Origin: Hyalangium minutum
GTDB taxonomy: Bacteria; Myxococcota; Myxococcia; Myxococcales; Myxococcaceae
NCBI RefSeq assembly: GCF_000737315.1
Contig: NZ_JMCB01000006.1
Location: forward strand, 1 to 64,000
DNA: 64,000 nt
Direction: 5' to 3'
The translations under genes and the position numbers were made by a program. The notes below the pieces were generated by a model. It saw only the letters and a program-made list of their open reading frames with translations. It was not told where the DNA came from and did not search any database. This document shows positions 1 to 51,281 of the stretch, in pieces; the stretch's first letter is position 1, and each line of letters begins with the position of its first letter.

Positions 1-873
1 GCACTCCCCGCTCCCCGCGTCCCACACCTTCACCGTGCTGTCATCCGCCCCGGACACCACTCGCTTCCCGTCCGGACTCCACCCGCACGCAATCACAGAG
101 CCCGCGTGCCCACTCAGCGTCAGCAGGCACTCCCCGCTCCCCGCGTCCCACACCTTCACCGTGCGGTCATACGCCCCGGACACCACTCGCTTCCCGTCCG
201 GACTCCACCCGCACGCATTCACAAAGCCCGCGTGCCCGCTCAGCGTCAGCAGGCACTCCCCGCTCCCTGCGTCCCACACCTTCACCGTGCTGTCATCCGC
301 CCCGGACACCACTCGCTTCCCGTCCGGACTCCACCCGCACGCAGTCACACCGCCCGCGTGCCCGCTCAGCGTCAGCAGGCACTGTCCGCTCCCCGCGTCC
401 CACACCTTCACCGTGCGGTCATACGCCCCGGACACCACTCGCTTCCCGTCCGGACTCCACCCGCACGCAGTCACAAAGCCCGCGTGCCCGCTCAGCGTCA
501 GCAGGCACTCCCCGCTCCCCGCGTCCCACACCTTCACCGTGCTGTCATCCGCCCCGGACACCACTCGCTTCCCGTCCGGACTCCACTCGCACGCATTCAC
601 AAAGCCCGCGTGCCCGCTCAGCGTCAGCAGGCACTGTCCGCTCCCCGCGTCCCACACCTTCACCGTGCGGTCAGACGCCCCGGACACCACTCGCTTCCCG
701 TCCGGACTCCACCCGCACGCAGTCACAAAGCCCGCGTGCCCGCTCAGCGTCAGCAGGCACTCCCCGCTCCCCGCGTCCCACACCTTCACCGTGCTGTCAT
801 CCGCCCCGGACACCACTCGCTTCCCGTCCGGACTCCACCCGCACGCAGCCACAAAGCCCGCGTGTCCCTGCAG
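1..873 (-). repeat. 126-bp (42-aa) near-identical tandem repeat encoding WD40 blades; 6 complete units plus 1 nearly complete unit visible
   Basis: Units start on the - strand at 873, 747, 621, 495, 369, 243 and 117. Consensus LSGHAG[F/G/S]V[T/N/I/A]AC[G/E]WSPDGKRVVSGA[D/Y/S]D[S/R]TVKVWDAGSG[E/Q]CLLT. Confidence 0.97.
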
Positions 874-3750
874 GACCATCAGCCGAGAGCCCTCTCGCCG
901 AGGATGACTCGGGCGCTCGTGGATCAGCGAAGCCTGGTGCTCCCAATTCTCCGGCAGAGTGGCCCCAGCAGCGCTCACTCCGATCCACTGGCAACCCTCG
1001 AGTTGAGCACCCTGGAGGTCCGCCTCCACCAGCGAGCCTCTTTTCCACCGGAGCCCGCGGAAGTCGCTCCCCTGGGCGCGGACACGCGGCGCGCTCACGC
1101 TCAAGAACACCGCTTGCCGGGCTTGCACGCCTGTGAGCTGAGCATTCCCAAGCTCCACGTACTCGAGCCGCGCACGGTTGAGCCGCGCGCTCGAGAGGTC
1201 GGCTCCACGAAGGTTGAGCGGCTGCGAGGCGCTACGGCCCTTGAGCCTCCAGCCCTCCAAGTTCGCTCCCGCCAGCTTCACCCGTGCAGGCGTGGGCGCC
1301 GGGTACCCCTGCTCGAGCGCGCGCATCCAGTACGCGAAGGCCAGCCCGGCGGCGCTCAGCGTGTCTCCCCCCAGAATGGACTCCATGGCGCTCAAGGCCT
1401 TCTTGGGGTCTCGCTCCCACTCCATGAGCTGCCCGAGGAAGTCCACCGTCTCCCAGGACACCTCCTCCAGCGCCCACCGCTCCAGCTTGCCTTCCTCCAA
1501 GGCGCGCTTGAGGTAGGTGGCCAGGAAGTACTCCTGCAAGGAGGTATGCGCGAAGCGGAAGTGCCGCTCCTCATCGGTAGGCCGCAGGACAAAGGTCGCC
1601 GTGCGCAAGTCCTCCTTCAGTACCGCACGCTCCTTGGTGGCATACGCTGCGGCAATCGCCGGGTTCGACAGCAGGTACTCGTCAAACCATGCCTCCAGCC
1701 GATCCACTGCCCATTGCTTGCTGCCCTCTCTCCAGAGCGCGGCGGCGAGCTCCTCCATCAGCTGGCGCTTATGGTCCTGTCCCAGTTGGTGCTTCCCGTT
1801 GTCCCGGTTGATCCATGACCGCACCACGAGTTCGTACAACCGCGCGGCGTTCACCTTCTCACGCCGGGCCTTGAGCGACTCCAGCTCACCCAGGTGCTCG
1901 CCGATGAGTGAGAGCAGGTAGGGCCGCTCCGCGAGATCCCGAAGGTTGTGGATGGACTGGATGATCTCGAAAGCCTCGCCCCCACGCGCTGGCGTGCCCA
2001 GGAAGTCCGCCAGATAGCTCTGGATCTGCGCCTCGGTGAAAGGCAGCAGGCAGAGGGCGGGGAAGTTCTTGCGCTCGATGCCTTCGCGGTGCTCGCCAAC
2101 AAGCATGGCATTCTGACTGGCCACGTCGCGGAAGTAATGAGAGCGGCAGGAGATGAGGAGCTTGCCCCGCCGCTTTCCCTCCGGAAGCGGATCCCGAGTC
2201 CGGGCGGCATCGGGCAACACAGCCCAGAGTGTCCGGATGAAGTCCTGGGCGCGAGTCGGCGAGAGGTGGACGATCTTCTCGTCCAAGCCATCGAACAGGA
2301 TGACGGCTCCCTCCTCCCGAACCAAGCGCAACACGTCCTGGGACATGATGCCCCGATGGCTCACCTTCCAGCTCCGCTCGATGACGCTGGTGAGAAGCTG
2401 ATCGATGGTCGGAACGGTGTCCTTGGACTCGCCCACGTAGGCCCGGAGATCCACGTAGATGGGGAGCGGCACGCTCGAATCCACGCGGCGTTTCTTCATC
2501 AACTCCCGGGTGAACTGCTTCAGGGTGGTGGTCTTGCCGATGCCGTACTCGCCGAGCAGCGCGAAGAACGGGGGTGCGCTGGGGTTGAGGGCCCATGTCT
2601 CCAGCTCTTCCAGGGCATCGCGCGCCTGCAGTTCATCCGCGCGGCGCTTGTCAGCCGGGGCGAGCTGTTCCATCTCGTGGAGAGCGAGCCGGTGGGCCCG
2701 GTTCCGCTGATAGTGCAGGGTCTCCTCGGGAACCGGGACATGGTCAGCGGCGGTGCTTGTGTCGCCCTCCTTGGACTCGCGAGGCGACGCCGATGGACCA
2801 GGCGCGGGGGGCGGAGCGAAGAAGGCGTTGAGTCTCTTCTCGATCGCCAGATAGAGCTTGAAGACGAAGTCCCGCTTCATCGCCCCCGTGTTCATCTGGT
2901 CGTAGTAGCGCCCCTCGATTCGCGGCGTTCGCATCAGGAAGATCTGGTGCTCGCCGAGCCCCTTGAGGTCATGGCTCCCGAACGACACCGGCACCACCCC
3001 CACGGGCAGGACGGGCTTGCGCTCCGAGTCATCCTCGGGACCTACGAAGTGAGGCAGTTCCTTCTCACGGATGAACTTGCTGGCAAAGAAAGAGGGGCTC
3101 ACCATCAGCAGCCCGAAGTCGCAGCTCTGGATGCCCTGCTCGATGCTCTGGCGCCACTTGTCGCCCAAGAGGATGTCCTGGTCGATCCAGTCGATGAGCT
3201 CGTAGCGAGCCGAGGCGGCAAAGTGGGTTTTCAGTTCCTTCACCAGGGCGTCGACGAGTGTTCGATTGTCGTGGGCGTAGGAGACGAAGAAGCGCACCTT
3301 GCGCTTGCCAGGCGTGTTGACCGCTCCGGTGGTCGTTGCGAGGCCTTTGGCCTTGATCAGCGGCTTGCCCTCGACGTCGGCCGTGGACTCGTCTGAGAAC
3401 TTCTCCGCCTGCTTGACGGCCGGATCAGGGCCGGTGAACCAGCAGAAGCGCTCCTCGGGCGGGTTCTTCTTCTTCGAATCCACCTCGAAGCGCAACCCAA
3501 GGCCGGAACCGTCCTCGCCCACGGAGACGTCGTTCACACGCTTCCGGAAGGAGGCCAGCGCCAGTTGCGCCTCGCGCCCCTTCTTGTCCGGGAAGAGCAC
3601 ATTGAGGCAGTCGGACATCCGGAAGCGACCCGCCGCCGCCAGGGTGACCGCTTTCTCCAAGCGCTCCCGATCCGACTTGCCGAGTTCTTCGAGCCAGGGC
3701 TCCACGGCCACGCGGAGGCCTTCACCAGAAAGAGGCTGAGACGATCCCAT
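1..3750 (-). CDS. NLR-like protein: N-terminal unknown domain + TIR + NACHT NTPase + pentapeptide repeats + WD40 repeats (3' end outside window)
   Basis: Not in the ORF track; translated by hand from ATG at 3750 (MGSSQPLSGEG...), staying in frame to position 1. TIR-like RFFVSYAHD...DWIDQDILLGDKW...DFGLLMVSPSFFASKFIREKEL (~3300-2830). Walker A GEYGIGKTT (2530-2553) and Walker B VILFDGLDE (~2280-2305). Pentapeptide-like LAGANLEG/LRGADLSSARLNRARL/ADLQGAQLEG (~1270-990). WD40 GH...WSPDGKRVVSG..D.TVKVWD from 873 down. Confidence 0.9.
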   Translation of the reverse strand, partial: MGSSQPLSGEGLRVAVEPWLEELGKSDRERLEKAVTLAAAGRFRMSDCLNVLFPDKKGREAQLALASFRKRVNDVSVGEDGSGLGLRFEVDSKKKNPPEERFCWFTGPDPAVKQAEKFSDESTADVEGKPLIKAKGLATTTGAVNTPGKRKVRFFVSYAHDNRTLVDALVKELKTHFAASARYELIDWIDQDILLGDKWRQSIEQGIQSCDFGLLMVSPSFFASKFIREKELPHFVGPEDDSERKPVLPVGVVPVSFGSHDLKGLGEHQIFLMRTPRIEGRYYDQMNTGAMKRDFVFKLYLAIEKRLNAFFAPPPAPGPSASPRESKEGDTSTAADHVPVPEETLHYQRNRAHRLALHEMEQLAPADKRRADELQARDALEELETWALNPSAPPFFALLGEYGIGKTTTLKQFTRELMKKRRVDSSVPLPIYVDLRAYVGESKDTVPTIDQLLTSVIERSWKVSHRGIMSQDVLRLVREEGAVILFDGLDEKIVHLSPTRAQDFIRTLWAVLPDAARTRDPLPEGKRRGKLLISCRSHYFRDVASQNAMLVGEHREGIERKNFPALCLLPFTEAQIQSYLADFLGTPARGGEAFEIIQSIHNLRDLAERPYLLSLIGEHLGELESLKARREKVNAARLYELVVRSWINRDNGKHQLGQDHKRQLMEELAAALWREGSKQWAVDRLEAWFDEYLLSNPAIAAAYATKERAVLKEDLRTATFVLRPTDEERHFRFAHTSLQEYFLATYLKRALEEGKLERWALEEVSWETVDFLGQLMEWERDPKKALSAMESILGGDTLSAAGLAFAYWMRALEQGYPAPTPARVKLAGANLEGWRLKGRSASQPLNLRGADLSSARLNRARLEYVELGNAQLTGVQARQAVFLSVSAPRVRAQGSDFRGLRWKRGSLVEADLQGAQLEGCQWIGVSAAGATLPENWEHQASLIHERPSHPRREGSRLMVLQGHAGFVAACGWSPDGKRVVSGADDSTVKVWDAGSGECLLTLSGHAGFVTACGWSPDGKRVVSGASDRTVKVWDAGSGQCLLTLSGHAGFVNACEWSPDGKRVVSGADDSTVKVWDAGSGECLLTLSGHAGFVTACGWSPDGKRVVSGAYDRTVKVWDAGSGQCLLTLSGHAGGVTACGWSPDGKRVVSGADDSTVKVWDAGSGECLLTLSGHAGFVNACGWSPDGKRVVSGAYDRTVKVWDAGSGECLLTLSGHAGSVIACGWSPDGKRVVSGADDSTVKVWDAGSGEC

Positions 3751-3794
3751 GCACCTCTAAATGCTCCGGTCCACGCGAAAGCACAAGACGCTTC

Positions 3795-3830
3795 TTGATG
3801 ATTTTGATGATTCCTTGATGTTTTTATCAT
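3795..3830. promoter_or_regulatory. AT-rich element with three TTGATG direct repeats upstream of the NLR-like gene
   Basis: TTGATG at 3795, 3804 and 3815, followed by TTTTTATCAT. It lies 45-80 bp upstream of the 3750 start and is strongly AT-rich for this window. Confidence 0.35.
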
Positions 3831-3884
3831 CGGGTGGGTCTTTGTAGGCATGCCGGACCCTCCTGATGTGCCTACGCTGAGGGC

Positions 3885-4010
3885 ATGCCGTTGTCTCCTG
3901 AGGAACTCGCGCAGCTGGAACGACTTGCCGCAGCCAGCCGAGCCTCCGCAGCCCTCCACAGGCTCCGTGCTGAGCAAGCACCCAAGACACGTTGCCCTCC
4001 CAAGCGCTGA
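3885..4010 (+). CDS. Possible 41-aa small protein (MPLSPEELAQLERLAAASRASAALHRLRAEQAPKTRCPPKR)
   Basis: ATG at 3885 preceded by GAGGGC, TGA at 4008-4010, helical-looking N-terminus. No family recognised. Confidence 0.2.
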   Translation: MPLSPEELAQLERLAAASRASAALHRLRAEQAPKTRCPPKR

Positions 4011-4180
4011 TCATCTGCAAAGAGAAGAAGCGCCGCGCGAGGTGTTTGGGTCCACAGGCGAACGGGAAAGTGCCAAAGGGACTTGCTGTCCGCCTGACTC
4101 GTTGGCTCAAGTAGCTGGCTCGGACGGGAAGATGCGGCGCCCCAAGGGGTTATAAGGGGCCGGTAACCAGGAGAGCAGGC

Positions 4181-5623
4181 ATGCGCCTCGTGAAAACGCA
4201 GGAAGTGTCGGAGCAGGAGCGCCCCCTCGAAGAGGCCTTCGAGCGGCTCCAGGCGCGCCGCTGGGAGATGGCTCAGACCACCGCCAAGGAGCGGCTCGCT
4301 CGCCTGGAGCGCCTCAAGGCCAACATCCTCAGCCGCCGCGAAGCCCTCGCCGAGGCTCTCTTCGCTGACTTCCGCAAGCCCCGCGCCGAGGCCGAAAGCA
4401 CCGAGATCCTCCCCGTCCTCATGGAGCTAGCCCACACCGCCAAGCACCTCAAGTCTTGGATGAAGCCTCGCAAGGTCGAGACGCCGCTCCTCCTCACCGG
4501 CACCCACAGCGAGGTCCGCTACGAGCCCAAGGGCGTCGTGCTCGTCATCGCCCCGTGGAACTACCCCTTCTGTCTGGCCATCGCCCCGCTGATTGCCGCC
4601 GTGTCCGCCGGCAACTGCGTCATGCTCAAGGCCAGCGAGAAGACGCCCCACGTCGCCGCCTTCCTCGAGTCCCTCATCAAGGACACCTTTGATTCCACCG
4701 AGGTCACCACCATTCAGGGCGGCCCGGAGATCGGCGAGGCCCTGCTGCGCCTCCCCTTCGATCACTTCTTCTTCACCGGTGGCCCGCGCGTGGGCCAGAA
4801 GGTCATGGCCGCCGCCGCGCGGCACCTCTCCGGCGTCACCTTGGAGCTGGGCGGCAAGTCCCCCGTCGTCGTGGACGCCTCCGCCGACGTGAAGGCTGCC
4901 GCCGAGCGCGTCGTCTGGGGCAAGTTCCTCAACGCCGGCCAGACGTGCATCGCCCCCGACTACGTCTTCGTCCATGCCTCCCAGGAGGAGGCGTTCCTCT
5001 CCGCCGCCAAGGACGCACTGGAGCGCTTCTACGGAAAGACCGAGGAGGCCCGCCGCGCCAGCCCCGACCTCTGCCGGCTCGTGGATGACGCCGCCTTCTC
5101 TCGCGTCTGCGGTCTGCTGGATCGCACCGTCAGCTCGGGCAGCCGCGTGGTGGCCGGTGGCGTGGTGGATGCGCCCAGCCGCTACATCGCTCCCACGCTG
5201 CTCGCGGACGTGACGGCCGAGTCCGCCGTCATGGAAGAGGAGATCTTCGGGCCGCTCCTGCCCGTGCTGCGCTTCGAGCAGCTCGACACGGTGGTGAGCT
5301 TCATCCGGAGCCAGGGCAAGCCGCTGGCCATGTACATCTTCAGCACGGACGACGATGCCGTAGAGCGGCTGCTGCGGCAGACCTCCGCCGGAGGCACCGT
5401 GGTGAACAACGTCATCCTCCACATCGTGAACCCCGGCCTGCCCTTCGGCGGCGTGGGGCAGAGCGGGCTCGGCGCGTACCACGGTGACACCGGCTTCCGG
5501 GAGCTGAGCCACGCGCGCGCCGTGATGAAGCAGGGGCGCGCCTCGCTGGCCCACTTCTTCTTCCCGCCGTACACCGGCAAGGCGCAGCAACTCGCCCGGC
5601 TCGCGAGCCGCTTGTTCGAGTAG
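4181..5623 (+). CDS. NAD(P)-dependent aldehyde dehydrogenase (ALDH3/coniferyl-aldehyde dehydrogenase-like)
   Basis: APWNYP, FTGG, ELGGKSP (catalytic Glu), GQTCIAPDY (catalytic Cys), EEIFGP, PFGGVGQSGLG. GGAG ribosome-binding site upstream. Confidence 0.93.
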   Translation: MRLVKTQEVSEQERPLEEAFERLQARRWEMAQTTAKERLARLERLKANILSRREALAEALFADFRKPRAEAESTEILPVLMELAHTAKHLKSWMKPRKVETPLLLTGTHSEVRYEPKGVVLVIAPWNYPFCLAIAPLIAAVSAGNCVMLKASEKTPHVAAFLESLIKDTFDSTEVTTIQGGPEIGEALLRLPFDHFFFTGGPRVGQKVMAAAARHLSGVTLELGGKSPVVVDASADVKAAAERVVWGKFLNAGQTCIAPDYVFVHASQEEAFLSAAKDALERFYGKTEEARRASPDLCRLVDDAAFSRVCGLLDRTVSSGSRVVAGGVVDAPSRYIAPTLLADVTAESAVMEEEIFGPLLPVLRFEQLDTVVSFIRSQGKPLAMYIFSTDDDAVERLLRQTSAGGTVVNNVILHIVNPGLPFGGVGQSGLGAYHGDTGFRELSHARAVMKQGRASLAHFFFPPYTGKAQQLARLASRLFE

Positions 5624-5632
5624 CCTGCGCTT

Positions 5633-6259
5633 GTGCTGACCGTCGACCCTCATCCCCTCCTGGATGCCCTGGCCTTCACCACCACCTTCCCAGGGCCTCT
5701 GTCCTCCCTGCCCTCCCCGGAGTGGCTCACCGCCCTCCTGAAGCAGGGCACCTCCGCGCCGCTCTCCAGCGATGACGCCGTGCGCGGCGTCGTCCGGGAC
5801 TTGCTGCGCCACGGCGGCTACAAGCCCACCGGCCGGGGCAAGCCCGCCTCCGAGTACCTCGTGCGCGCCTCGGGCGATGGCTCGCTGGGCTCCATCAACG
5901 CCGCCGTGGATGCGTGCAACGCCGTCTCCCTCCACAGCGGCCTCCCCATCAGCGTGGTGGACCTCGACCGCGCGAAGGCCCCCTTCCGCCTCGGCATCGC
6001 CCCCCAGGGCTCCGAGTACGTCTTCAACGCTTCCGGGCAGACCATCGACCTGTCCGGCCTGCTGTGCCTCTTCGACGCCGACGGCCCCTGCGCCAACGCC
6101 GTGAAGGACGCCCAGCGCACCAAGACGAACGCGGATACCCGCCGCACCCTCACTGTTCTCTGGGGCGCCAAGGCCCTGGGCGACCGCACCTCCCGCGCCT
6201 TCACCTGGTACCGCGAGCTGCTCGAGCGCCTCGGAGCCACCGTGGAGCGCGTTCCCTGA
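5633..6259 (+). CDS. Stand-alone B3/B4 domain protein (PheRS-beta editing-domain-like)
   Basis: GYKPTGRGKPASEYL, INAAVDACNAVSLHSGLPISVVDLD and DADGPCANAVKD are typical of stand-alone B3/4 proteins. Confidence 0.8.
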   Translation: MLTVDPHPLLDALAFTTTFPGPLSSLPSPEWLTALLKQGTSAPLSSDDAVRGVVRDLLRHGGYKPTGRGKPASEYLVRASGDGSLGSINAAVDACNAVSLHSGLPISVVDLDRAKAPFRLGIAPQGSEYVFNASGQTIDLSGLLCLFDADGPCANAVKDAQRTKTNADTRRTLTVLWGAKALGDRTSRAFTWYRELLERLGATVERVP

Positions 6260-7362
6260 GCACGCTGGACCTCGAGCTGCTGCTGGCCGACGGTGCCCGC
6301 ACGCTCTCCGCCACTTGGGGCCGCCCGGTGCTGCTCACGGCTCCCGAGGTCCTCCGCACCACGGAACGCAGCGACGTGGTCCGCGCCCGCGTGGTCGGCG
6401 GTGGCCAGGAGCCCAGCGTCGTCCTCAAGCACTTCCGGGATGACCCTGTCTGCGGACTGGATGACTGGGCCGCGCACGTGTTCCTCACCCAGCGAGGCCT
6501 GTACATCGGCCCCCGCTTCCTCGCGGGCAGCGAGGAGGCCCGCCTCTTCATCATGGAGGACCTCGGCCGGGGCCAAAGCCTGGAAACACTGCTCCAGGGC
6601 AACGAGGCGTACACCGCCAGCGGTGCGCTGATGTCCATCGTTCGGCTCACCTCCGTGCTGCACGTCCGCACCCTCGGCGCACAGTCGGACTACGACACCG
6701 TCCGCCAGTCGATCGAGCCTCGCCACGAGCGCGTCCGCATCGAGAACGCCCGCTACCTGCTGGACAACGCCGGGCGCCTGCGGCGGTGGCTCGCGGAGGT
6801 GGGCGCGAAAGAGGACCCGGGCCTCCAAGCGGATCTGGAGCAGGTGGCGCGAGGGCTCGCCGACCCCGGCCCGTTCCTCGTCTTCACCCACGGAGACATG
6901 GCGCCGAGCAACACGCTCTTCTCGCGGGACGGCCCGCGCCTCGTGGACTTCGAGTACGGCGGCATGCGCAGCGCCCTCTACGACGCGCTGATGTGGCTGC
7001 TCACCGTGCCGTTCCCCGACGAGCTCATCTCCCGCGCGGACCTCTACTACCGCGCCGGGCTGAGCCAGGGCTGCTACGCGGCACAGGTGGACTCGGACTA
7101 TCTGCGCGCCCGCGCCACCGTGGCCGCCGCGCGCACCGTGAACGTCTTCCAGTGGATCTCCCCCAAGGCCCTGGAGAGAGACAGGGACTGGGCCCCCGGC
7201 TTCACCGAGCGCACTGCGCTGCTGCGCCACCTCGAGCGGCTCCGGATCATCCTGCAGCCCTTCAACCCTGTCCCCGCGCTCTCGCGCACGCTCGAGTCCC
7301 TGGAAGTCCGCCTGCGCGAGCGCTGGACCGTGCAGCCCTTCGTCTGGCCCGCGTTCCGGTGA
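6256..7362 (+). CDS. Aminoglycoside-phosphotransferase/choline-kinase-like phosphotransferase
   Basis: Brenner-type motifs HGDMAPSN and LVDFEYG, plus VVLKHF. The start is uncertain: the in-frame codon overlapping the upstream TGA is CTG (6256). The upstream part of track ORF 5914-7362 overlaps the B3/4 gene and is likely spurious. Confidence 0.7.
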   Translation: MSTLDLELLLADGARTLSATWGRPVLLTAPEVLRTTERSDVVRARVVGGGQEPSVVLKHFRDDPVCGLDDWAAHVFLTQRGLYIGPRFLAGSEEARLFIMEDLGRGQSLETLLQGNEAYTASGALMSIVRLTSVLHVRTLGAQSDYDTVRQSIEPRHERVRIENARYLLDNAGRLRRWLAEVGAKEDPGLQADLEQVARGLADPGPFLVFTHGDMAPSNTLFSRDGPRLVDFEYGGMRSALYDALMWLLTVPFPDELISRADLYYRAGLSQGCYAAQVDSDYLRARATVAAARTVNVFQWISPKALERDRDWAPGFTERTALLRHLERLRIILQPFNPVPALSRTLESLEVRLRERWTVQPFVWPAFR

Positions 7363-7383
7363 GGCCCGGAGAGCGCCTCGCGG

Positions 7384-7890
7384 TCAGAGGCCGAGCTGCT
7401 CCCGAATCGCCGCGACCACCGCGTCCGGTCCCGGCGTCACGTCCACCGGCAGCGCATCCTTCGGCGCCTCCAGCGCCGCGAACTGGCTGTCGAGCAGGCT
7501 CGGCGGCATGAAGTGCCCCGTGCGCTGCGCCAGCCGGCTCGCGATTACCTCCCGGGGCGCCCACAGGTACACCCACTTCACCTGCGCCGGATCCACCGTG
7601 AGCAGCAGCCGGTAACGCTCCTTCAGCGCCGAGCACGCCATCACCACCGGCTCCCCGCGCTCCAGGGCCTCCTGGATGAGCCCGCGCAGCCGCTCCAGCC
7701 AGGGCGCACGGTCCTCGTCCGTCAGCGGGATGCCCGCGGCCATCTTCGCCACGTTCGCCGGAGGGTGGAAGTCATCCCCCTCCACGAAGCGCCAGCCCAG
7801 CAACTGAGCGAGCCGCTTCCCCACCGTCGTCTTCCCCGCTCCCGCCACTCCCATGAGGATGATCACCACTCGCCAGCTCCCCGGATTCAC
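7384..7890 (-). CDS. gntK: Gluconokinase (GntK/IdnK family)
   Basis: MGVAGAGKTTVG P-loop, EGDDFHPPANVAKMAAGIPLTDEDRAPWL, ACSALK, HFMPPSLLDSQFAALE. The true start may be a GTG near 7866-7869. Confidence 0.92.
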   Translation of the reverse strand: MNPGSWRVVIILMGVAGAGKTTVGKRLAQLLGWRFVEGDDFHPPANVAKMAAGIPLTDEDRAPWLERLRGLIQEALERGEPVVMACSALKERYRLLLTVDPAQVKWVYLWAPREVIASRLAQRTGHFMPPSLLDSQFAALEAPKDALPVDVTPGPDAVVAAIREQLGL

Positions 7891-8052
7891 AGATGCACTT
7901 CACCCATGGTGCGGCACTTCCCGCCCCGTTGCTACCCCCGAGGATAGGCACCGTTCACCCACCCTCCAGGGTCCTCTGTCCACGTCGGACCTGAGAGATA
8001 CGATTCCCTCTGTCGCCGCGAGGAATTCGCGGCGTTGTGAGGGTTCCATCGC

Positions 8053-9138
8053 GTGGCCGATATTCCGAATGGCGGGCAAGTCGAGGTCAAAGGCTCGGGT
8101 GCCAAGCCGTACATCTTGAAGAACACGGGCGGTGTCTACTCGTGCTCGTGCCCAGCGTGGCGCAACCAGTCCACCACCATCGAGCGCAGAACCTGCAAGC
8201 ACCTGCGCAAGATTCGCGGAGATGAGGCTGAGGACGCTCGCATCGGCGCCCCCGCTCCCGCCACCAATCGCACTGCCAACCGCGCCACCGCCTCCAAGCG
8301 CGCCGCTCCCGCCGCCACCGAGGGCAAGGCCCCGCCGGTGCTGCTGGCCCACTCGTGGCAGAACGACACGGACCTCACGGGCTGGTGGATGAGCGAGAAG
8401 CTCGACGGCGTGCGCGCCTACTGGGACGGCACGCGGTTCCTCTCGCGCCAGGGCAACCCCTTCTACGCTCCGGACTGGTTCACCGAAAAGCTGCCCGACT
8501 CCCCGCTCGATGGCGAGCTGTTCGGCGGCCGCAAGAAGTTCCAGCGCACCGTCAGCGTCGTCCGTCGCCAGGACATGAGCGATGACTGGAAGGAGCTGGC
8601 CTTCGTCATCTTCGACGCCCCCAGCATGGACGCGCCCTTCGAGGAGCGCATCGCCCACGTGGAGCAATACGTGGAGGACGTGGCGCCCCCGTATGCCGAG
8701 TGGCTCTCGCACCAGCCCTGCCAGGGCGTGAAGCACCTGCGCGAGGAGCTGGCGCGGGTGGAGGGGCTCGGCGGCGAGGGGCTCATGCTGCGCCAGCCCG
8801 GCTCGCGCTACGAGGTGGGCCGCTCCTACACCCTCCTCAAGGTGAAGAGCTTCCATGACGACGAGGCGCGCGTCATTGGCCACCAGGCCGGCGCGGGCCG
8901 CCACAAGGGCCGCCTCGGTGCGCTCGAGGTGGAGCTGCGCAACGGCACCCGCTTCTCCGTGGGCACCGGCCTGTCCGACGCGGAGCGCGGGAACCCGCCG
9001 CCCCTCGGCAGCATCATCACCTTCCGCTACCAGGAGCTCTCCAACGACGGAGTGCCGCGCTTCCCCTCCTATGTGGGGGTGCGCATCGACGCGGCGCCCT
9101 GGGAGCCCACCCCGGGCGGCAAGCGCAAGCGCGCGTGA
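8053..9138 (+). CDS. Minimal ATP-dependent DNA ligase with N-terminal SWIM-type zinc finger
   Basis: CSCPAW...CKHL (CxC...CxH). SEKLDGVRAYWDG (adenylated Lys), EGLMLR, LLKVK, and a C-terminal OB fold (FSVGTG...ITFRYQELSNDGVPRFP). Confidence 0.9.
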   Translation: MADIPNGGQVEVKGSGAKPYILKNTGGVYSCSCPAWRNQSTTIERRTCKHLRKIRGDEAEDARIGAPAPATNRTANRATASKRAAPAATEGKAPPVLLAHSWQNDTDLTGWWMSEKLDGVRAYWDGTRFLSRQGNPFYAPDWFTEKLPDSPLDGELFGGRKKFQRTVSVVRRQDMSDDWKELAFVIFDAPSMDAPFEERIAHVEQYVEDVAPPYAEWLSHQPCQGVKHLREELARVEGLGGEGLMLRQPGSRYEVGRSYTLLKVKSFHDDEARVIGHQAGAGRHKGRLGALEVELRNGTRFSVGTGLSDAERGNPPPLGSIITFRYQELSNDGVPRFPSYVGVRIDAAPWEPTPGGKRKRA

Positions 9139-9196
9139 GCTGACGCACCGCGCCTTGGCCGGGCCCCGCATTCCACCCGCGGGCCCGGTAGAGCGT

Positions 9197-9213
9197 CAGA
9201 TCGTAACGATCTG
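9197..9213. promoter_or_regulatory. Perfect inverted repeat CAGATCGT-A-ACGATCTG, candidate operator
   Basis: Exact 8-bp arms with a 1-nt spacer in the ligase/kinase intergenic region. Confidence 0.35.
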
Positions 9214-9421
9214 GAAAGAATGACAGACCCGGCATTGAACGATTTGACGTCGCACCTCGGGTGACGACGTACACCTGTTCGCTGGGTACCACTGCAACGC
9301 CGCGAACTCGCTCGCATGGACAGCGGCCGTCCTCCGGGATTCGACACATCGTCCAACCGGCGGAGAAGCACATGTCTTGCATTGGAACGGGGTTAACCCC
9401 CTTTCCAGTTCCTCAGGCCCC

Positions 9422-10876
9422 ATGCGCTGCGAGCTTTGCCTCTCCGAACACACTGACGACGTGCTGTGCGGAAACGTGTCCTGGACTCAGTCGGACGAGG
9501 TCACCGCCAAGGACGAGCCACCGCAACCGCCAGCGACGCAACCCCGCATGGCGGCGGCCGTGCCGGTGGATCTGGTGGGAAAGATGATCGGTCCCTACCG
9601 CGTGGTGCGGCGGCTGGGCTCGGGCGGCATGGGCACGGTGTACCAGGCGGAGCAGACGCGCATTGGCGCGCGGGTGGCGCTCAAGGTGCTGCACCCGCAC
9701 CTCAGCCAGGACGAGGGCCTGCGCGCCCGCTTCTACGCCGAGGCGAAGACGGTGAACGTGGTGGGGCACCCGAACATCGTCCGCATCTTCGACATCAACG
9801 AGGCCCCGGGCAGCCTGCACTACTTCGTCATGGAGTACCTGGAGGGCGAGCCGCTGTCGCAGCTGCCGCGCCCGCTGGAGCCGGGCCTGCTCACGCACCT
9901 GCTGGGCGAGGCCTGCGAGGCGCTCGAGGCCGCGCACAACGCGGGCGTGGTGCACCGCGACTTGAAGCCGGACAACCTCTTCGTGGTGCGGCGCGAGTCC
10001 TCGCAGCGTCCCTCGCTCAAGGTGCTGGACTTCGGCGTGGCCAAGGCGCGCGGCCCGCTCACGCACCCGCGGCTCACCGCCGTGGGCATGGTGCTGGGCA
10101 CGCCCGCGTACATGGCCCCCGAGCAGTGGACGGGGCAGCCGGTGGACGGGCGCGCGGACATCTATGCGCTCGGCGTGACGGCCTACCTCATGGCCACCGG
10201 GCGGCTGCCCTATCCTCGTGGCCAGGTGGCGGAGCTCGTCCTGTCGGCCACGGCGCCCATGCCCACCGCTCCGCACCTGCTCAACCCGCGCATCCCCCTG
10301 GGGCTCTCGGAGGCCATCCTGCGCGCGCTGGCGCGGCGGCCCGCGGAGCGCTTCGCCCAGGCGCTCCAATTCAAGCAGGCGCTCGAGGCCGCCATGCGCG
10401 ATCCCACCCGGAGCCGGCCCACTCCGGTGCCGGGAGGCCCGCTCGCCAGCACGCCCGTGCCCTCGCCCACCGTGTCCCTGCGCACGCCGCAGGCGCACCT
10501 GCCCCGCGAAGAGGCGCCCACGCCGCAGAGCTGGACGGCCGTCGTGCGCCGCCGCAGCGGCACGGGCGCGGTGGAGGTGCAGTGCACGGAGCTGAGCCGC
10601 GGTGGCCTCTTCATGTGCTGCTCGGAGCCCTTCCCGCAGCTGTTCGGCCGGCTCGCGTTCACGCTGAGGCTCGACGGCGTGCCCGTGGAGTGCGAGGCCG
10701 AGGTGGTGCGGCACGTGGACTCGGCGCAGGCGCGCACCTGGGGCATGTCCCCCGGCGTGGGGCTGCAGTTCATCAACCCCTCCGCCCAGCTTCGCGAGTA
10801 CCTGCGCCGGCTGTGCCCCTCGCGCGTCATGCCCGCCGCGCCCGTGGCCATGCCCCAGGACTGCTCTCTGCTTTGA
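9422..10876 (+). CDS. Hanks-type Ser/Thr protein kinase with C-terminal PilZ-like domain
   Basis: LGSGGMGTVY, VALK, HRDLKPDN, DFG, GTPAYMAPE. C-terminal TELSRGGLF...AEVVRHV...GVGLQF is PilZ-like. Start placed at ATG 9422 (MRCELC). Confidence 0.9.
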   Translation: MRCELCLSEHTDDVLCGNVSWTQSDEVTAKDEPPQPPATQPRMAAAVPVDLVGKMIGPYRVVRRLGSGGMGTVYQAEQTRIGARVALKVLHPHLSQDEGLRARFYAEAKTVNVVGHPNIVRIFDINEAPGSLHYFVMEYLEGEPLSQLPRPLEPGLLTHLLGEACEALEAAHNAGVVHRDLKPDNLFVVRRESSQRPSLKVLDFGVAKARGPLTHPRLTAVGMVLGTPAYMAPEQWTGQPVDGRADIYALGVTAYLMATGRLPYPRGQVAELVLSATAPMPTAPHLLNPRIPLGLSEAILRALARRPAERFAQALQFKQALEAAMRDPTRSRPTPVPGGPLASTPVPSPTVSLRTPQAHLPREEAPTPQSWTAVVRRRSGTGAVEVQCTELSRGGLFMCCSEPFPQLFGRLAFTLRLDGVPVECEAEVVRHVDSAQARTWGMSPGVGLQFINPSAQLREYLRRLCPSRVMPAAPVAMPQDCSLL

Positions 10877-11002
10877 GCCCCCGTCCTCTGTCGCCTGCCG
10901 CCCACGGCTCTGTGGCAGACCGTCGGATTGTCAACTGGGGAATTCCCTCGACTTTCCCTGCCACTCCATCGAATGGATGAGCACCGGTAGTCTCAAAATT
11001 CG

Positions 11003-11833
11003 ATGGAAGCCGAAAAACGCCATGCGAGCGCAGGGACGCGGTGGGCAGGGAGCCTCTGCGGGCTCGTGTTGCTGGGGTGGGCCGTGCTCGCCGGTGGGTG
11101 CCGGGAGTCTGTGGGCACAGCGCTGTATGTCACCATCGACTTCGACCCCTCGATGATGATGGATCAGCTGCGGGTGTCCGGCACGGTGGCGGGCAGTGGC
11201 GTGGGTCCGCAAGTCCTCCCCGCGCAGCCCGAGCGGCTGCTGGCCAACGGCGACACGTTCCGCGTGCTGCTGCCCTCCGCGCCCGACAAGGCCGAGGCGG
11301 AGCTGACCGTGGAGGGGCTGCGCGAGGGCACTCGGGTGTCGCAGGGTAAAGCCCAGGTGCAGGTGCTCGAGAACATGGAGGTGGACGTCACCGTGCGGCT
11401 GGAGCCCACTCCGCCGGATGACGGCGTGTTCTGCCCCAACTGCCCGGACGGCTGCTGCATGTCCGGCGTCTGCACCACGTCCACCTTCAACACCTGCGGC
11501 ACGGGCGGCATCGCCTGCACGACGTGCAACGCGAGGACGGCGGACTCGTGCTCGAATAAGGGCTTCTGCGCCTGCGGGCGGAGCGCCGCGTGTGATCCGC
11601 GCACCACGGACCGGTGCCTGTCCGGGCTGTGCCGCTGTGGCCTCAACGCGCCGTGCGGCTTCGGCCAGGAGTGCGTGTCCGGCCGGTGCGAGTGCACGCC
11701 GAACTCGTGCGCGGGGTGCTGCTCCGGTGGCGTCTGCAACCCGGGCAACACGAAGGACCGGTGCGGCAAGGGCGGAGGTGCGTGCGTGAAGTGCGCTGAC
11801 ACCTGCAACACCACCACCGGTACCTGCTCCTGA
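11003..11833 (+). CDS. Cys-rich putative lipoprotein
   Basis: Hydrophobic signal ending in LAGGC (lipobox-like), a beta-rich middle, and a C-terminal ~120 aa of repeated C-x2-C/CC/CxC units. Confidence 0.75.
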   Translation: MEAEKRHASAGTRWAGSLCGLVLLGWAVLAGGCRESVGTALYVTIDFDPSMMMDQLRVSGTVAGSGVGPQVLPAQPERLLANGDTFRVLLPSAPDKAEAELTVEGLREGTRVSQGKAQVQVLENMEVDVTVRLEPTPPDDGVFCPNCPDGCCMSGVCTTSTFNTCGTGGIACTTCNARTADSCSNKGFCACGRSAACDPRTTDRCLSGLCRCGLNAPCGFGQECVSGRCECTPNSCAGCCSGGVCNPGNTKDRCGKGGGACVKCADTCNTTTGTCS

Positions 11834-11846
11834 GAGGGAGGTGGCC

Positions 11847-12455
11847 ATGACCCAAGCGCTGCCGAAGCGCCGGGCCCGGGGCTGGGGCTCCGCGCGCATC
11901 TACGCGCTGGGCCACTCCACCCGGACGGCGGAGGAGCTGGTGGAGCTGCTGCAGGCCCACGGCGTGGGGATGCTGGCGGACATCCGCACGGTGCCGCGCT
12001 CGCGCACCAACCCGCAGTTCAACCGGGACACGCTGCCGAGGACGCTGGCGGCGGCGGACCTGCGCTATGCGCACCTGCCCAAGCTCGGAGGACTGCGGCG
12101 GCCCCGGCCGGACTCGCCCAACGGCGCCTGGCGCAACAAGAGCTTCCAGGGCTACGCGGACTACATGCAGACGGAGGACTTCGCGCAGGGGCTGGAGGAG
12201 CTGCGGGTCCTCGCCGAGGAGGCACCGGTGGCCCTCATGTGCGCGGAGGCCCTGCGCTGGCGCTGCCACCGCAGCCTCGTGGCGGATGCGCTGTTCGCGC
12301 GCGGAGTGCAGGTGCTCCACATCCTCAGCCGCACGCGCGTGGAGCCGCACCGGCTCACCTCTTTCGCAGAGCTCCACGGCCGGCAGGTGCTCTACCCGCC
12401 GCACGGCGAGGACACGGAGCCTACCGCCGCTCTGGAGCCCCGCGGCCGCACCTGA
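11847..12455 (+). CDS. DUF488 family protein
   Basis: IYALGHSTR, LADIRTVPRSRTNPQFN, LGGLR, WRNKSFQGYADYM, ALMCAEALRWRCHRSLVADAL. Confidence 0.88.
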   Translation: MTQALPKRRARGWGSARIYALGHSTRTAEELVELLQAHGVGMLADIRTVPRSRTNPQFNRDTLPRTLAAADLRYAHLPKLGGLRRPRPDSPNGAWRNKSFQGYADYMQTEDFAQGLEELRVLAEEAPVALMCAEALRWRCHRSLVADALFARGVQVLHILSRTRVEPHRLTSFAELHGRQVLYPPHGEDTEPTAALEPRGRT

Positions 12456-12464
12456 GCGCCGGGC

Positions 12465-14195
12465 TCACTCCACGCTGAAGCGGCAGCGCTCGCGCTCCTG
12501 GGCGATGGCCTCGTCGTCGCGCAGCGGGGCGTGGCGAGACACCATGTCCTGGGCTTCCCAGGCGTAGGGCTGGCCGTTGAGCCGCACGCGCCCCTCAGCC
12601 ACCAGCCGTGTCGCCACCAGCAGCGGCACGCGAGCCAGGTCCCTCATCAGCGCCTCGAAGCGCCCCTGCTGCGCCGGATCCACGAAGCGGAAGCGGGCGC
12701 GCGCCACCACCGCGAGGTGGAACCACATGGGACGGAACGCCACGCCATCGAGCTTCAGCCGATCCGCCATGAGCATGAGCATCTCCGCTGCTTCGCGCGA
12801 TAACCCCAATCCTGGCACCTCCTGGCCTGGGAGTTGGGGACGCAAGGCGCTGAAGTGCGCGAGCGGATGGCGCAGCGTGAGCCAGTTGACGAAGAGATAG
12901 GTGTCCTCGCCCAGCCGCCGACGCTCCAGGACACAGTCCACCAGCAGGTGTTCCTGCCCCCCGGCGCGACCGAGCAACTGGATGCGATCGCCCGCGCCCG
13001 TGGGGCCCACCTCCACGCGCAGCGGGCCGTAGCCCAGCCGCTCCAGGTGCGTCAGCACCCCGTAGCGGAACAGCGAGTACTCGAGCGACTGCGCGGTGTA
13101 GTAGCCCAGCACCCGCGACTCCGCCGAGAGCGTGAAGCCCCTGGAGCCCTCCAGGTCCTCCTGGGTGATGGGCTCCCAGTCCGTCAGCGGCTCCTTCGAC
13201 AGCATCCGGGAGATGCGCTGGAACCGGGCGCTGAGCGGATCGAACCGGGCCTGGATGGGCTGGTGCCCCCGTCCTCCCAGCACGAGGATGGAACCGGCGA
13301 ACACCTTCCAGGAATCTTCGTGGTACCCACCGCCGGGCACCCAGACCTGAGGCACGCCCCGGAGCGCCCGCGCCACGAGCCGATCCCTCCGCCGCGCGCC
13401 CTCCAGCGAGAGCCCCAGGCAGCCGAAGCGGTCGGCGTGCAGCACGTCCCCTCCGGCGATGACGAAGGCCAGGTCCGCCCGAGGCATGCGGGCCAGCAGC
13501 GCCTCCAGCGCGCCCAGGTACTCCGCATCACCGGCGTTCCGGGGCAGCAGCACCTCGTCCACACCCGCCACGGTTCCCCAGTCGCTCCCGGAGATGGAGC
13601 CGATCCACACCTTCGAGTCCTCGGCGAGGCACGCGGCGGTGCCATCCGGAGGGTGCGCGTCCAGGTCCAGCACCACCGTCCTGCCGGAGAAGCCCTCCTC
13701 GCGCACGGCCTTCAGCGCCACGGCGAGATCATTCAGCGCGCAGAAGCCCCCGCCCTGGCCGGGCGCGGCATGGTGGTAGCCTCCCGCGAGGTTCGCGACA
13801 GATCGGCGCCGGGCCAGCGCCATCCGAGTGGCCTCCAGCGTGCCTCCACAAGCGTGGCGCAGCGAGTCCAGCACCGCATCCACCGGCACATCCGAAGGGT
13901 CCACCGCGAAGATGCGCGCCAGCGTCTCCGGGCGTCCGAGGGACTCCAGGTAGACGGCGCTGTGCACCCGGGCCAGCTGGGCGTACGAGACGGGCCGCGG
14001 GCGGTGCACATCCTCGGCGCGCACCGCGCCCGTCTCCAGCAGGTACCAGGTGGTGAAGTCCACGCGGCGCGGCTCGACGCCGGTGGAGAGCTCGAGGCCC
14101 GCGAAGGGCAGCCGGTAGGAGGCATCGTAGAAGACGGGCACCCGCGCCCGCTCCGGGCACAGCCGCACGCTCCATGACTCCAGCCAGCCTCTCAT
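12465..14195 (-). CDS. Histone-deacetylase-superfamily amidohydrolase with ~240-aa C-terminal extension
   Basis: NLAGGYHHA, GGFCALNDLA, LDLDAHPPDGT, GGDVLHADRFG, GGGY. Confidence 0.88.
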   Translation of the reverse strand: MRGWLESWSVRLCPERARVPVFYDASYRLPFAGLELSTGVEPRRVDFTTWYLLETGAVRAEDVHRPRPVSYAQLARVHSAVYLESLGRPETLARIFAVDPSDVPVDAVLDSLRHACGGTLEATRMALARRRSVANLAGGYHHAAPGQGGGFCALNDLAVALKAVREEGFSGRTVVLDLDAHPPDGTAACLAEDSKVWIGSISGSDWGTVAGVDEVLLPRNAGDAEYLGALEALLARMPRADLAFVIAGGDVLHADRFGCLGLSLEGARRRDRLVARALRGVPQVWVPGGGYHEDSWKVFAGSILVLGGRGHQPIQARFDPLSARFQRISRMLSKEPLTDWEPITQEDLEGSRGFTLSAESRVLGYYTAQSLEYSLFRYGVLTHLERLGYGPLRVEVGPTGAGDRIQLLGRAGGQEHLLVDCVLERRRLGEDTYLFVNWLTLRHPLAHFSALRPQLPGQEVPGLGLSREAAEMLMLMADRLKLDGVAFRPMWFHLAVVARARFRFVDPAQQGRFEALMRDLARVPLLVATRLVAEGRVRLNGQPYAWEAQDMVSRHAPLRDDEAIAQERERCRFSVE

Positions 14196-50300: not shown

Positions 50301-51281
50301 TCAGTCCCCGCCCTCGGAGCTGCCCTCGCCCTCGCCCTCGGAGCCCTCGTAGCCCTCGCCCTCGCCTTCGTAGCCGCCCTCGTCGCCGTAGTCCCCGGAG
50401 TTGCCGGAGGACACGTTCTTGGCCACCTCATCGAGGTTCTTGGGCCACGAGGCCCCCGTGGGCTTCGGATCCTGAGAGGGCACATACACCTCCGCCTGGT
50501 TCTCGCCGGTGATGTTGATCCACGCGAGCACGCGCGTGGTGCCCGGGGTGGCCAGGGGAATGCGCACCATGCGGCGCACCTCGCCCGGGGTGCCCTCGAA
50601 GAGCGCCACGTTGAGGGTGGCCAGCGTGTGGGCCTTGTCACCGCTGGGCCAGTAGTTGGTGGCGATCAGGTAGATGCCCTGGGGCGGCGCCCGGTGGATA
50701 TAAAGGTAGGGGCCGTAGGCAGGCTGATCGAAGTCGCCGCCCTGCTCGTTGAGGAAGAAGGTGCCGCCGGTGGGGCTGGAGGTGTCCGCCCAGTAGACGT
50801 GCGCCATCTTCTTGCCGTCCATCGTCAGGCCCTCGGCCGTCTTGGTGACGCTGTCGTTGGTGGGCTCGTAGACGTGGAGGTCCGTGTAGACGCCCTCGGT
50901 GTCGCTGGTGAGGATGGTCTTGAGCGGCACGGGCGGAATCTGCGCGTACGCCGTCACCTGCGAGCGCGCCGTGCCCGCCTGGTTGGTGGCCATCACCGTG
51001 ACGATGTTCTTGCCGCTGGCGGCGGGGAACTTCCGGCTGAAGCGCCCGTTGAAGGTGCGCATCAGGTACCGGTCTCCGTTGATGGAGACGACCACCGGAT
51101 CAATGGTGGTGTCGCTGATCGTCCCCTCCACCAGCATCATCCGGTCCACCGTCCAGCCGCCGGTGGGGGCAGTGAGCGTGACCTTGGCCAGCTTGGTGCC
51201 CGTGCCAATGGGCACGCCCTGCTGGCGAGGGTTCTCGTGCGGCGTCTGGGTGAGGAGCAGTGCCAGGAAGACAGGCAGCAT
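50301..51281 (-). CDS. YfaP (DUF2135)-like secreted protein with acidic Gly/Glu/Tyr tail
   Basis: Signal peptide, VVSINGDRY, N+VTV.ATN, ILTSDTEGVYTDLHVYEP, YGPYLY...PPQG.Y...NYW, IPLATPG. Confidence 0.78.
   Translation of the reverse strand: MLPVFLALLLTQTPHENPRQQGVPIGTGTKLAKVTLTAPTGGWTVDRMMLVEGTISDTTIDPVVVSINGDRYLMRTFNGRFSRKFPAASGKNIVTVMATNQAGTARSQVTAYAQIPPVPLKTILTSDTEGVYTDLHVYEPTNDSVTKTAEGLTMDGKKMAHVYWADTSSPTGGTFFLNEQGGDFDQPAYGPYLYIHRAPPQGIYLIATNYWPSGDKAHTLATLNVALFEGTPGEVRRMVRIPLATPGTTRVLAWINITGENQAEVYVPSQDPKPTGASWPKNLDEVAKNVSSGNSGDYGDEGGYEGEGEGYEGSEGEGEGSSEGGD

Follow-up and report, generated by a model that had tools for sequence, protein, structure and literature searches.

The DNA examined here, referred to as the window, comprises 64,000 nt starting at base 1 of contig JMCB01000006.1 (1,037,819 bp) in the draft genome of Hyalangium minutum DSM 14724 (GCA_000737315.1, an accession given in PMC5441343). 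At its left edge lies a minus-strand gene, represented in the database by protein P0001 (contig positions 1 to 3711), that runs into a tandem array of near-identical 126-bp units, each encoding one WD40 repeat. Only one long open frame passes through the array; it extends stop-free from a stop codon near 3756 to window position 1 on the minus strand and comprises 1252 codons. Analysis of the gene, its repeats and its relatives suggests that the array is the truncated sensor of an NLR-like STAND protein, in which concerted evolution of the repeats is probably combined with diversifying selection on a small set of surface codons.

A Pfam scan revealed the domain order NNH6-TIR-NACHT-pentapeptide-WD40 between about 3711/3750 and 1 (Table 1). 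This is the tripartite layout of NLR-like proteins, with NNH6 and TIR_2 on the effector side, then NACHT, then the pentapeptide segment and the WD40 units, seven stretches of which were matched by the Pfam WD40 model (1.4e-86). The same scan did not find a HET domain at the N-terminus, where NNH6 and TIR_2 lie instead. The NACHT match barely exceeds its cutoff, and a PDB sequence search with the N-terminal 959 residues returned bacterial TIR and pentapeptide-repeat proteins and no NACHT relative; the Walker A (GIGKTT) and Walker B (DGLDE) motifs are nearly invariant in an alignment of 44 relatives. Judged by its domain content, the gene encodes an NLR-like STAND protein of the NACHT clade with a putative TIR effector, as the first-pass annotation of this DNA, made from the letters alone, had proposed in calling it a bacterial NLR. 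Of the two candidate starts, the GTG of the database protein agrees better than the upstream ATG with the starts of the closest relatives ('MEPWLEELGK'). The strand 'RLMVL' in the linker that precedes the first GH of the array is, from WD40 topology, likely the 'velcro' d-strand that closes the first propeller.

Tandem Repeats Finder reported a single strong array at 1-864 with a period of 126, 6.9 copies, 94% matches, zero indels and a score of 1581. Read on the minus strand, its coding strand, the array consists of six full units and one truncated unit within 1-873; for a unit starting at position S in the register L-S-G-H-A-G-F..., codon c occupies S-3(c-1) down to S-3(c-1)-2. The seven units share a mean pairwise identity of 94.8% at the nucleotide level and 90.7% at the amino acid level (amino acid minimum 0.872), and the mean of 0.907 places the array among the 'Highly-Repetitive' (HR) WD40 proteins, which are defined by an internal identity of at least 0.7. 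The DHSW tetrad residues His-4, Ser-22, Asp-26 and Trp-32 are invariant. Variation is concentrated at four codons, hereafter the hot codons, namely codon 7 (F/G/S), codon 9 (A/T/N/I), codon 25 (D/S/Y) and codon 27 (S/R). Beyond these, one unit carries a G/E switch at codon 12, two units carry an E/Q switch at codon 38, and unit 1, the edge unit, has Q in place of S at codon 2. Four codons show synonymous variants, namely 2 (AGT, unit 7), 3 (GGA, unit 1), 34 (GCA, unit 5) and 37 (GGA, units 2 and 4). Unit 1 is the most divergent, with 7-10 differences from the others, as expected of an edge repeat. The codon table thus reproduces the first-pass description of seven 126-bp units varying mainly at codons 7, 9, 25 and 27, exactly as listed and with the seventh unit truncated, and likewise the single G/E switch; it corrects that description on the E/Q switch, which had been called single, and on the synonymous differences, which had been put at about 2-3.

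Table 1. Features of the truncated minus-strand gene at the left edge of the window (window coordinates).
Feature	Position	Strand	Evidence
Start region	3709..3750	-	first in-frame ATG 3750-3748; database protein P0001 starts at GTG 3711-3709
NNH6, NACHT N-terminal helical domain 6 (aa 20-121)	3388..3693	-	Pfam PF22737, 7.4e-17, 62 bits vs cutoff 27
TIR domain (aa 154-252), putative effector	2995..3291	-	Pfam TIR_2 2.4e-13; PADLOC ThsB/TIR-like models; PDB bacterial TIR proteins 7uxr, 4lzp, 3h16
NACHT NTPase core (aa 397-512)	2215..2562	-	Pfam PF05729, 30.0 bits vs cutoff 26.7; Walker A GEYGIGKTT, Walker B ILFDGLDE
Pentapeptide-repeat segment between NACHT module and WD40 array (aa ~823-943)	922..1284	-	Pfam Pentapeptide 1.2e-09 (aa ~824-885); NCBIfam pentapeptide models; PDB 4yfo, 3du1
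Linker before the array, with strand 'RLMVL' ahead of the first GH	874..939	-	translation; model disordered only at residues 1-21 of 313
WD40 array, high internal conservation	1..873	-	Tandem Repeats Finder, codon table, Pfam, AlphaFold, Foldseek, phmmer
Units 1-6	873-748, 747-622, 621-496, 495-370, 369-244, 243-118	-	codon table
Unit 7, cut after codon 39 by the contig end	117-1	-	codon table
Hot codons 7, 9, 25, 27 of unit 1	855-853, 849-847, 801-799, 795-793	-	codon table

To locate the variable residues, the 313 residues encoded by 939-1 were modelled with AlphaFold2 from the alignment of 44 relatives. The model is a closed seven-bladed propeller with a mean predicted local distance difference test score (pLDDT) of 93.9 and a predicted template modelling score (pTM) of 0.88. 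By unit position, strand a covers 8-13, strand b 19-24, strand c 28-33 and strand d 39-42, continuing into 1-2 of the next unit. Position 7 is therein the last residue of the d-a loop, position 9 the second residue of strand a, and positions 25-27 form the b-c turn; codons 12 and 38 point toward the opposite face. The d-a loops and b-c turns of WD40 propellers make up their top face. Under the rule of Wu et al. (2012), hotspot R1 is the residue after the first V/L/I in strand a, R1-2 is found two places before R1, and D-1 comes ahead of the tetrad Asp; these three positions dominate the contacts in 29 WD40 complexes (PMC3419727). Codons 7, 9 and 25 correspond exactly to R1-2, R1 and D-1, respectively. 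Foldseek matched the model to the bacterial protein PkwA (5yzv) with a template modelling (TM) score of 0.96 and to the 14-repeat Nostoc protein 2ymu with a query-normalised score of 0.89, and phmmer recovered both. In 2ymu (match E = 7.6e-212), the residue-level alignment leaves position 9 (R/W/N) as the sole variable residue. These observations support the assignment of the hypervariable codons to predicted top-face hotspots.

Replacement changes are not only located at these positions but are also in excess there. Nei-Gojobori counts over all pairs of window units gave a proportion of non-synonymous differences (pN) of 0.33 at codons 7, 9, 25 and 27, and at the other 38 codons a pN of 0.018 with a proportion of synonymous differences (pS) of 0.049 (ratio 0.37). 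When changes were counted minimally, 9 of the 14 non-synonymous nucleotide changes fell in the four hot codons. These 9 changes on 10.0 sites compare with 4 synonymous changes on 31.3 sites, an excess of about 7-fold per site (binomial P = 7.6e-4), and the triple R1-2/R1/D-1, set beforehand, gave P = 4e-4. The pattern extends to the family. Among 73 other members, within-protein diversity is highest at positions 25, 7, 9, 6, 27 and 5, an overlap with the variable codons of the window that has P = 0.0018. Three orthologous 14-unit arrays, those of H. versicolor, of a metagenome-assembled genome (MAG) obtained with long reads and of Cystobacter fuscus Cbf 10, showed pN/pS of 1.4-1.7 at codons 5-9, 25 and 27 and of 0.16-0.45 at the other 35 codons. 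Positive diversifying selection at the hot codons, which the first-pass annotation had suggested checking codon by codon, is well supported but not proven; we do not take it as proven because the counting tests ignore recombination.

Comparison with the orthologous arrays disclosed a second property, homogenisation within each gene. With the hot codons excluded, the window units are 97.2% identical to each other at the nucleotide level, whereas their identity to units of the H. versicolor, MFD MAG or C. fuscus arrays never exceeds 80%; each of those arrays is itself homogeneous (91-97%). Every array therefore carries its own framework. In the window, all units read ACGWSPDGKRVVSGA.D.TVKVWDAGSGECLLT; all units of H. 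versicolor read ...GQRLLSGS.D.SLRVWDASSGQCLLT, those of the MFD MAG ...GQRVLSGS.D.SLKVWDAASGECLRT, and those of C. fuscus ...GQRILSGS.D.SLKVWDAASGSCLLT. Homogenisation at the DNA level, as first proposed from the window alone, is thus recovered on a wider set of arrays. Full-length relatives are typically about 1590-1640 aa long, with 14 units followed by a conserved tail. Fourteen units were counted in 31 of the 69 relatives having both ends and in all the reliable assemblies, which comprise three Cystobacter alleles, H. versicolor and the long-read MAG. The tail, which lies outside the window, spans about 55 residues after the 14th unit (CLWSG..LPE.Q.A.ID...ILHAS.EAWRWLGWRW.DP..G.LR.LPAE.FGPL; loci L001, L003, L018 and most full-length relatives) and may cap or close the second propeller or form a separate module. 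It is conserved from Myxococcota to Verrucomicrobiota and Planctomycetota. Because the architecture of 14 units plus tail spans these phyla, homogenisation after divergence explains the arrays better than independent recent amplifications. The closest protein-database relatives of the window gene, P0015 and P0019, are only 78-80% identical to it; querying the protein database with just the WD40 array recovered nothing beyond generic WD40 proteins, the best at 55% identity, and missed even the protein from which the query came.

The closest comparison of alleles was possible in Cystobacter, where the three C. fuscus-type alleles Cbf 10, NCWS and P0009 (on a 12.2-Mb contig) have 14 units each. 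The Cbf 10 and NCWS loci are syntenic across the whole 22 kb at 88-97% nucleotide identity, and the Cystobacter proteins share 88-96% identity outside the array. Within it, a unit-by-unit comparison of six hot positions gives only 33-46% identity. No combination of hot residues recurs at the same unit index among the three alleles, and for two of the three pairs of alleles not one combination is common to both members. As the first-pass annotation had anticipated for close relatives, the alleles therefore differ almost completely at the hot sites. Framework substitutions separate the same alleles in nearly all 14 units (SGS versus SAS; RIL versus RLL), which is a direct sign of recent sweeps through the array. 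A frameshift near 10393-10689 divides the NCWS ortholog (L017, 9728-14786) in two, and 4 residues are missing from the fourth WD40 unit of this ortholog; either it is a pseudogene or homopolymer errors of long reads are responsible. Closer to the window itself, the upstream side (about 3750-13700) is syntenic with the long-read MAG locus L003, where the flanking genes show 77-87% nucleotide identity and the NLR gene 73%, so that the NLR gene evolves faster than its neighbours. In L003, an additional stretch of about 3 kb separates the flank from the NLR gene.

Signatures compatible with exchange between units were found in several arrays. Exact intra-array repeats measure 164 nt in the window, with a lag of 2 units; in the complete C. 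fuscus Cbf 10 genome they measure 368 nt at a lag of 5, and in the long-read MAG 182 nt at a lag of 6. In the window, all four combinations of Thr-9/Asn-9 with Ser-27/Arg-27 are present (units 2, 3, 5 and 6). A strict four-gamete test on biallelic window sites returned zero incompatible pairs, and the Thr/Asn-Ser/Arg case, which needs two alleles of a tri-allelic site, is weak alone. The long exact repeats and the four combinations fit block exchange or duplication, without proving it. The first-pass annotation had further noted that DDS and xDR alternate strictly at codons 25-27 and had read this as duplication of a 252-bp unit of two blades. The alternation is present in all seven units as assembled (DDS, SDR, DDS, YDR, DDS, YDR, DDS), and units two apart differ by a mean of 4.2 nt compared with 6.8 nt between neighbours, a lag-2 mean this low in only 1.3% of all unit orders. 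The duplication itself fares less well, since these are seven units at a contig end and the orthologous arrays showed no lag-2 pattern, having lag-5 or lag-6 blocks or none; given that assembly and that absence, we rate the two-blade duplication as weak. Exchange between paralogs was inspected for one pair (P0002 and P0043 of H. versicolor), whose frameworks differ, and no other WD40 gene was found in the 64-kb window.

Concerted evolution together with diversifying selection on the sensor surface of this truncated NLR-like STAND gene, with block exchange reassorting top-face residues, is the explanation that we favour and hold to be probable. The window would contain a truncated sensor domain, at which the draft assembly stopped after 6.9 units; the intact sensor would comprise 14 WD40 units, enough for two seven-bladed propellers, and the tail of about 55 residues. 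Through recombination or gene conversion among them, the 126-bp units would stay near-identical, while selection would favour amino acid change at codons 7, 9, 25 and 27 of each blade, on the presumed ligand-binding top face. Exchange or duplication of whole units or blocks would then reassort blades with different top-face residues, so that a ring of about 4 x 14 contact residues could change fast as the fold and blade number stay fixed. If the protein behaves like characterised NLRs and bacterial NACHT proteins, binding of a ligand to the propellers would free the NACHT domain to oligomerise and so activate the TIR effector, with an immune or cell-death output.

Several points weigh against this explanation. 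The selection tests are counting methods without a recombination model, the key test has 13 changes in 7 units, and only 2 synonymous sites underlie the pS of the hot codons. The pN/pS ratios may moreover be inflated by homogenisation together with loop pN, because gene conversion erases synonymous differences and breaks the assumptions of the test. The placement on the top face derives from the secondary structure of the model (the DSSP string), standard WD40 topology and the rule of Wu et al. (2012), and is not a computed solvent exposure. Gain and loss of repeats, expected under the HET-E model, is at odds with the reliable assemblies, which show no polymorphism in repeat number. The evidence for recombination as the generator of the variants is indirect. 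A search of PADLOC-DB 2.0 gave no system-specific defence match (Avs/AVAST and others), only models of the TIR part (PDC-S66, SAVED_TIR and ThsB, at 8e-11 or weaker). Finally, the gene does not lie in a defence island; the genes around it encode an aldehyde dehydrogenase, B3_4, APH, a kinase, a DNA ligase, DUF488 and a deacetylase, none of which argues for a defence role.

The same evolutionary pattern could serve a role that is not anti-phage, for example in sensing kin or non-self (allorecognition) or as a scaffold for signalling in the social life cycle of myxobacteria, and the absence of a defence island would agree with this. The best-studied proteins with this pattern, HET-E, HET-D and HET-R, act in allorecognition (PMC4986451), and myxobacteria practise kin discrimination, according to work cited in PMC13449251. 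Against such a role, the bacterial NACHT proteins assayed so far defend against phage (Kibby et al.), bacterial TIR effectors are typically NAD-consuming defence modules, and the family also occurs in Verrucomicrobiota and Planctomycetota that are not social. We regard a role of this kind as unlikely, if the least so of the alternatives considered.

Slightly less plausible is that the repeats are simply young, the products of recent tandem duplication under relaxed constraint whose surface loops changed neutrally, with neither diversifying selection nor ongoing homogenisation. The low pS between units would agree with this, Hu et al. (2017) interpret highly repetitive prokaryotic WD40 proteins with low synonymous divergence as young duplications (PMC5587647), and loop positions are the least constrained in any WD40. 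Neutrality, however, cannot raise pN above pS, and the hot codons changed at about seven times the synonymous rate per site. Given an architecture of 14 units plus tail across phyla, and a uniform framework of its own in each myxobacterial species, young repeats would also require repeated re-amplification to exactly 14 units, which is itself concerted evolution. Nor would they account for framework substitutions that have spread through nearly all 14 units between alleles 88-96% identical elsewhere.

A more technical concern is that unit order, unit number and some variants, including the alternation, stem from the path of a short-read assembler through a repeat graph. Because window base 1 is contig base 1, the array is incomplete and the assembly broke within the repeats, the assembler having failed to cross them. 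The ordering of units further requires bridging the 164-nt exact repeat at a lag of 252, and with the contig end this makes unit number, order and strict alternation untrustworthy without long reads. Illumina assemblies of Podospora WD40 genes with high internal conservation (HIC) drop, invent or chimerise repeats, and long reads are required for them (PMC12222747). Within the present family, counts of 1-4 units before the conserved tail occur in metagenome assemblies only, including MEGAHIT 'k141' contigs (loci L004, L015, L016, L019, L022 and L029; proteins P0019, P0040, P0045-47, P0050, P0054 and P0114), compared with 14 in isolates and long-read assemblies. Since 1-4 units are too few for a closed propeller, these relatives are probably arrays collapsed by short-read assembly and not genuine short alleles. 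As an account of the whole phenomenon, artefact is nonetheless quite unlikely. The hot codons lie 6 nt apart within each cluster and the clusters 54 nt apart, so that the unit variants and their local combinations fall in the range of a single read, and the same positions vary in the complete genome of C. fuscus Cbf 10, in the long-read MAG (4.8-Mb contig) and in the 73 relatives. It remains a serious caveat on order, number and alternation, and the chance that at least one of these three is wrong in the window is considerable, only somewhat short of even.

Targeted hypermutation, in which a diversity-generating retroelement or similar mutagenic system writes the variable codons, is highly improbable: in multicellular bacteria such elements do generate diversity in putative sensors of NLR-like proteins (PMC10907252 and the supplementary discussion of Kibby et al.), but their known targets in these sources are C-type-lectin or FGS folds and not WD40, blastn found no template repeat (a second unit copy) elsewhere in the 64-kb window, no reverse transcriptase was found among the genes within 10 kb or the large open reading frames scanned (the far side of the gene lying beyond the contig end), and the variable nucleotides (T/G, T/G/C, G/A, C/A/T, G/T and A/C) do not form an adenine-specific spectrum.

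The combination of concerted evolution and top-face diversification favoured here is already documented, in fungi for the HNWD genes and in bacteria by surveys (Hu et al. 2017; Dyrka et al. 2020). The HNWD genes of Podospora anserina (HET-E, HET-D and HET-R) likewise encode a NACHT domain followed by 42-aa (126-bp) WD40 units of high internal conservation that evolve in concert and in which replacement changes concentrate at a handful of top-face positions in each blade; positive selection at such positions is described for the fungal genes (PMC4986451), as the first-pass annotation had noted. Their sensor is modelled as two 7-blade propellers (PMC4986451, PMC12222747). The two groups differ in several respects. 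The N-terminal effector is HET in the fungi and NNH6 plus TIR in the window gene, whose family also has the pentapeptide spacer and conserved C-terminal tail. Fungal repeat number varies (about 10-11 in functional alleles), whereas reliable assemblies of the present family keep 14, and fungal repeats are exchanged between paralogs, whereas the paralog P0043 of H. versicolor has a different framework. The window gene works like HNWD in the testable respects, but it is not a member of that family because it has no HET domain and its reliable assemblies show no repeat-number polymorphism.

Among prokaryotes, a catalogue of 'Highly-Repetitive' WD40 proteins was compiled by Hu et al. (2017), who remarked on their diversity at predicted hotspot sites (PMC5587647). 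Such HR or HIC proteins (2ymu; PkwA, 5yzv) resemble the window array in an internal identity of at least 0.7, an intact DHSW tetrad and diversity at R1-2, R1 and D-1. They were, however, treated by Hu et al. as young duplications without a test of concerted evolution or site-specific selection, and the solved examples crystallised as propellers only. Dyrka et al. (2020) described WD and TPR repeats of bacterial NLRs with 80-90% internal identity and proposed rapid diversification, and a 2026 survey associated HIC repeats with NLR architecture in all domains of life, leaving the mechanism outside fungi open (PMC13449251). The bacterial NACHT (bNACHT) anti-phage proteins and the NLR-like STAND proteins of multicellular bacteria have the same three parts as the window gene, an effector, a NACHT and a sensor made of repeats. 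Modules of the TIR, NNH, beta-propeller and pentapeptide types all appear among bNACHT architectures, with phage defence shown for other members, although none of the assayed bNACHT proteins named in the accessible part of Kibby et al. (2023) has the architecture of the window gene. Apaf-1 is a further parallel: its STAND NTPase precedes two WD40 propellers, to which the activating ligand binds, and Apaf-1 chains match the array; it differs in having an AP-ATPase instead of NACHT, 7 + 8 divergent blades without internal homogenisation and a CARD effector. Overall, the first-pass interpretation of a bacterial NLR that generates recognition specificities by intragenic recombination is largely right: it is right in kind, its mechanism is unproven and its details rest on an unreliable contig end.

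Other features of the window were recorded as well. Antisense to the NLR gene, a 570-aa open reading frame at 106-1818 (+) is annotated publicly as a gene (L046, 11894-13606) and has no Pfam match; it and a frame at 35-907 (+) across the array are almost certainly spurious antisense frames, common in high-GC genomes. A 2140-aa Rhs-repeat protein of the polymorphic-toxin type, with Transglut_core and DUF6531, is encoded at 26148-32570 (-) in the lowest-GC stretch of the window (0.62-0.64 compared with about 0.69), which suggests horizontal acquisition. At 32586-40979 (-) lies a gene for a giant surface-type protein of 2797 aa with CARDB, FG-GAP and Big_13 domains, adjoined by a 743-aa open reading frame without a Pfam match, and near it, at 43374-48080 (-), one for a bacterial alpha-2-macroglobulin of 1568 aa (MG2, A2M, TED, bMG10). 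Short tandem repeats at 43759-43795, 50309-50387 and 63516-63556 have periods of 18-24 bp, in-frame sizes, and lie inside coding regions (Tandem Repeats Finder scores 54-77).

One further possibility, which we consider a long shot, is that the array acts as a contingency locus, in which RecA-type exchange among the 14 near-identical blades would be frequent enough to give a clonal swarm subpopulations with different top-face combinations. This would be compatible with the data because alleles 96% identical elsewhere share no hot-residue combination and because exact multi-unit duplications exist. If true, it would amount to anticipatory, population-level recognition of phage or non-kin, comparable in bacteria to the het-type allorecognition of fungi or to the somatic diversification of receptors.

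For the study of NLRs more broadly, short-read assemblies break or collapse arrays of this kind, and entries with 1-4 blades, like fragments at contig ends, should not be taken at face value. In fungi, the high internal conservation of NLR repeats has been studied in depth; for bacteria, surveys have reported it, and a similar working has only been proposed. The family described here shows side by side a fixed blade number, species-specific frameworks, four top-face codons per blade and near-complete turnover between syntenic alleles. Its NNH6-TIR-NACHT-pentapeptide-14xWD40 members come from culturable organisms, and the family is tractable both for following sensor diversification by repeat shuffling and for the question of the ligand.

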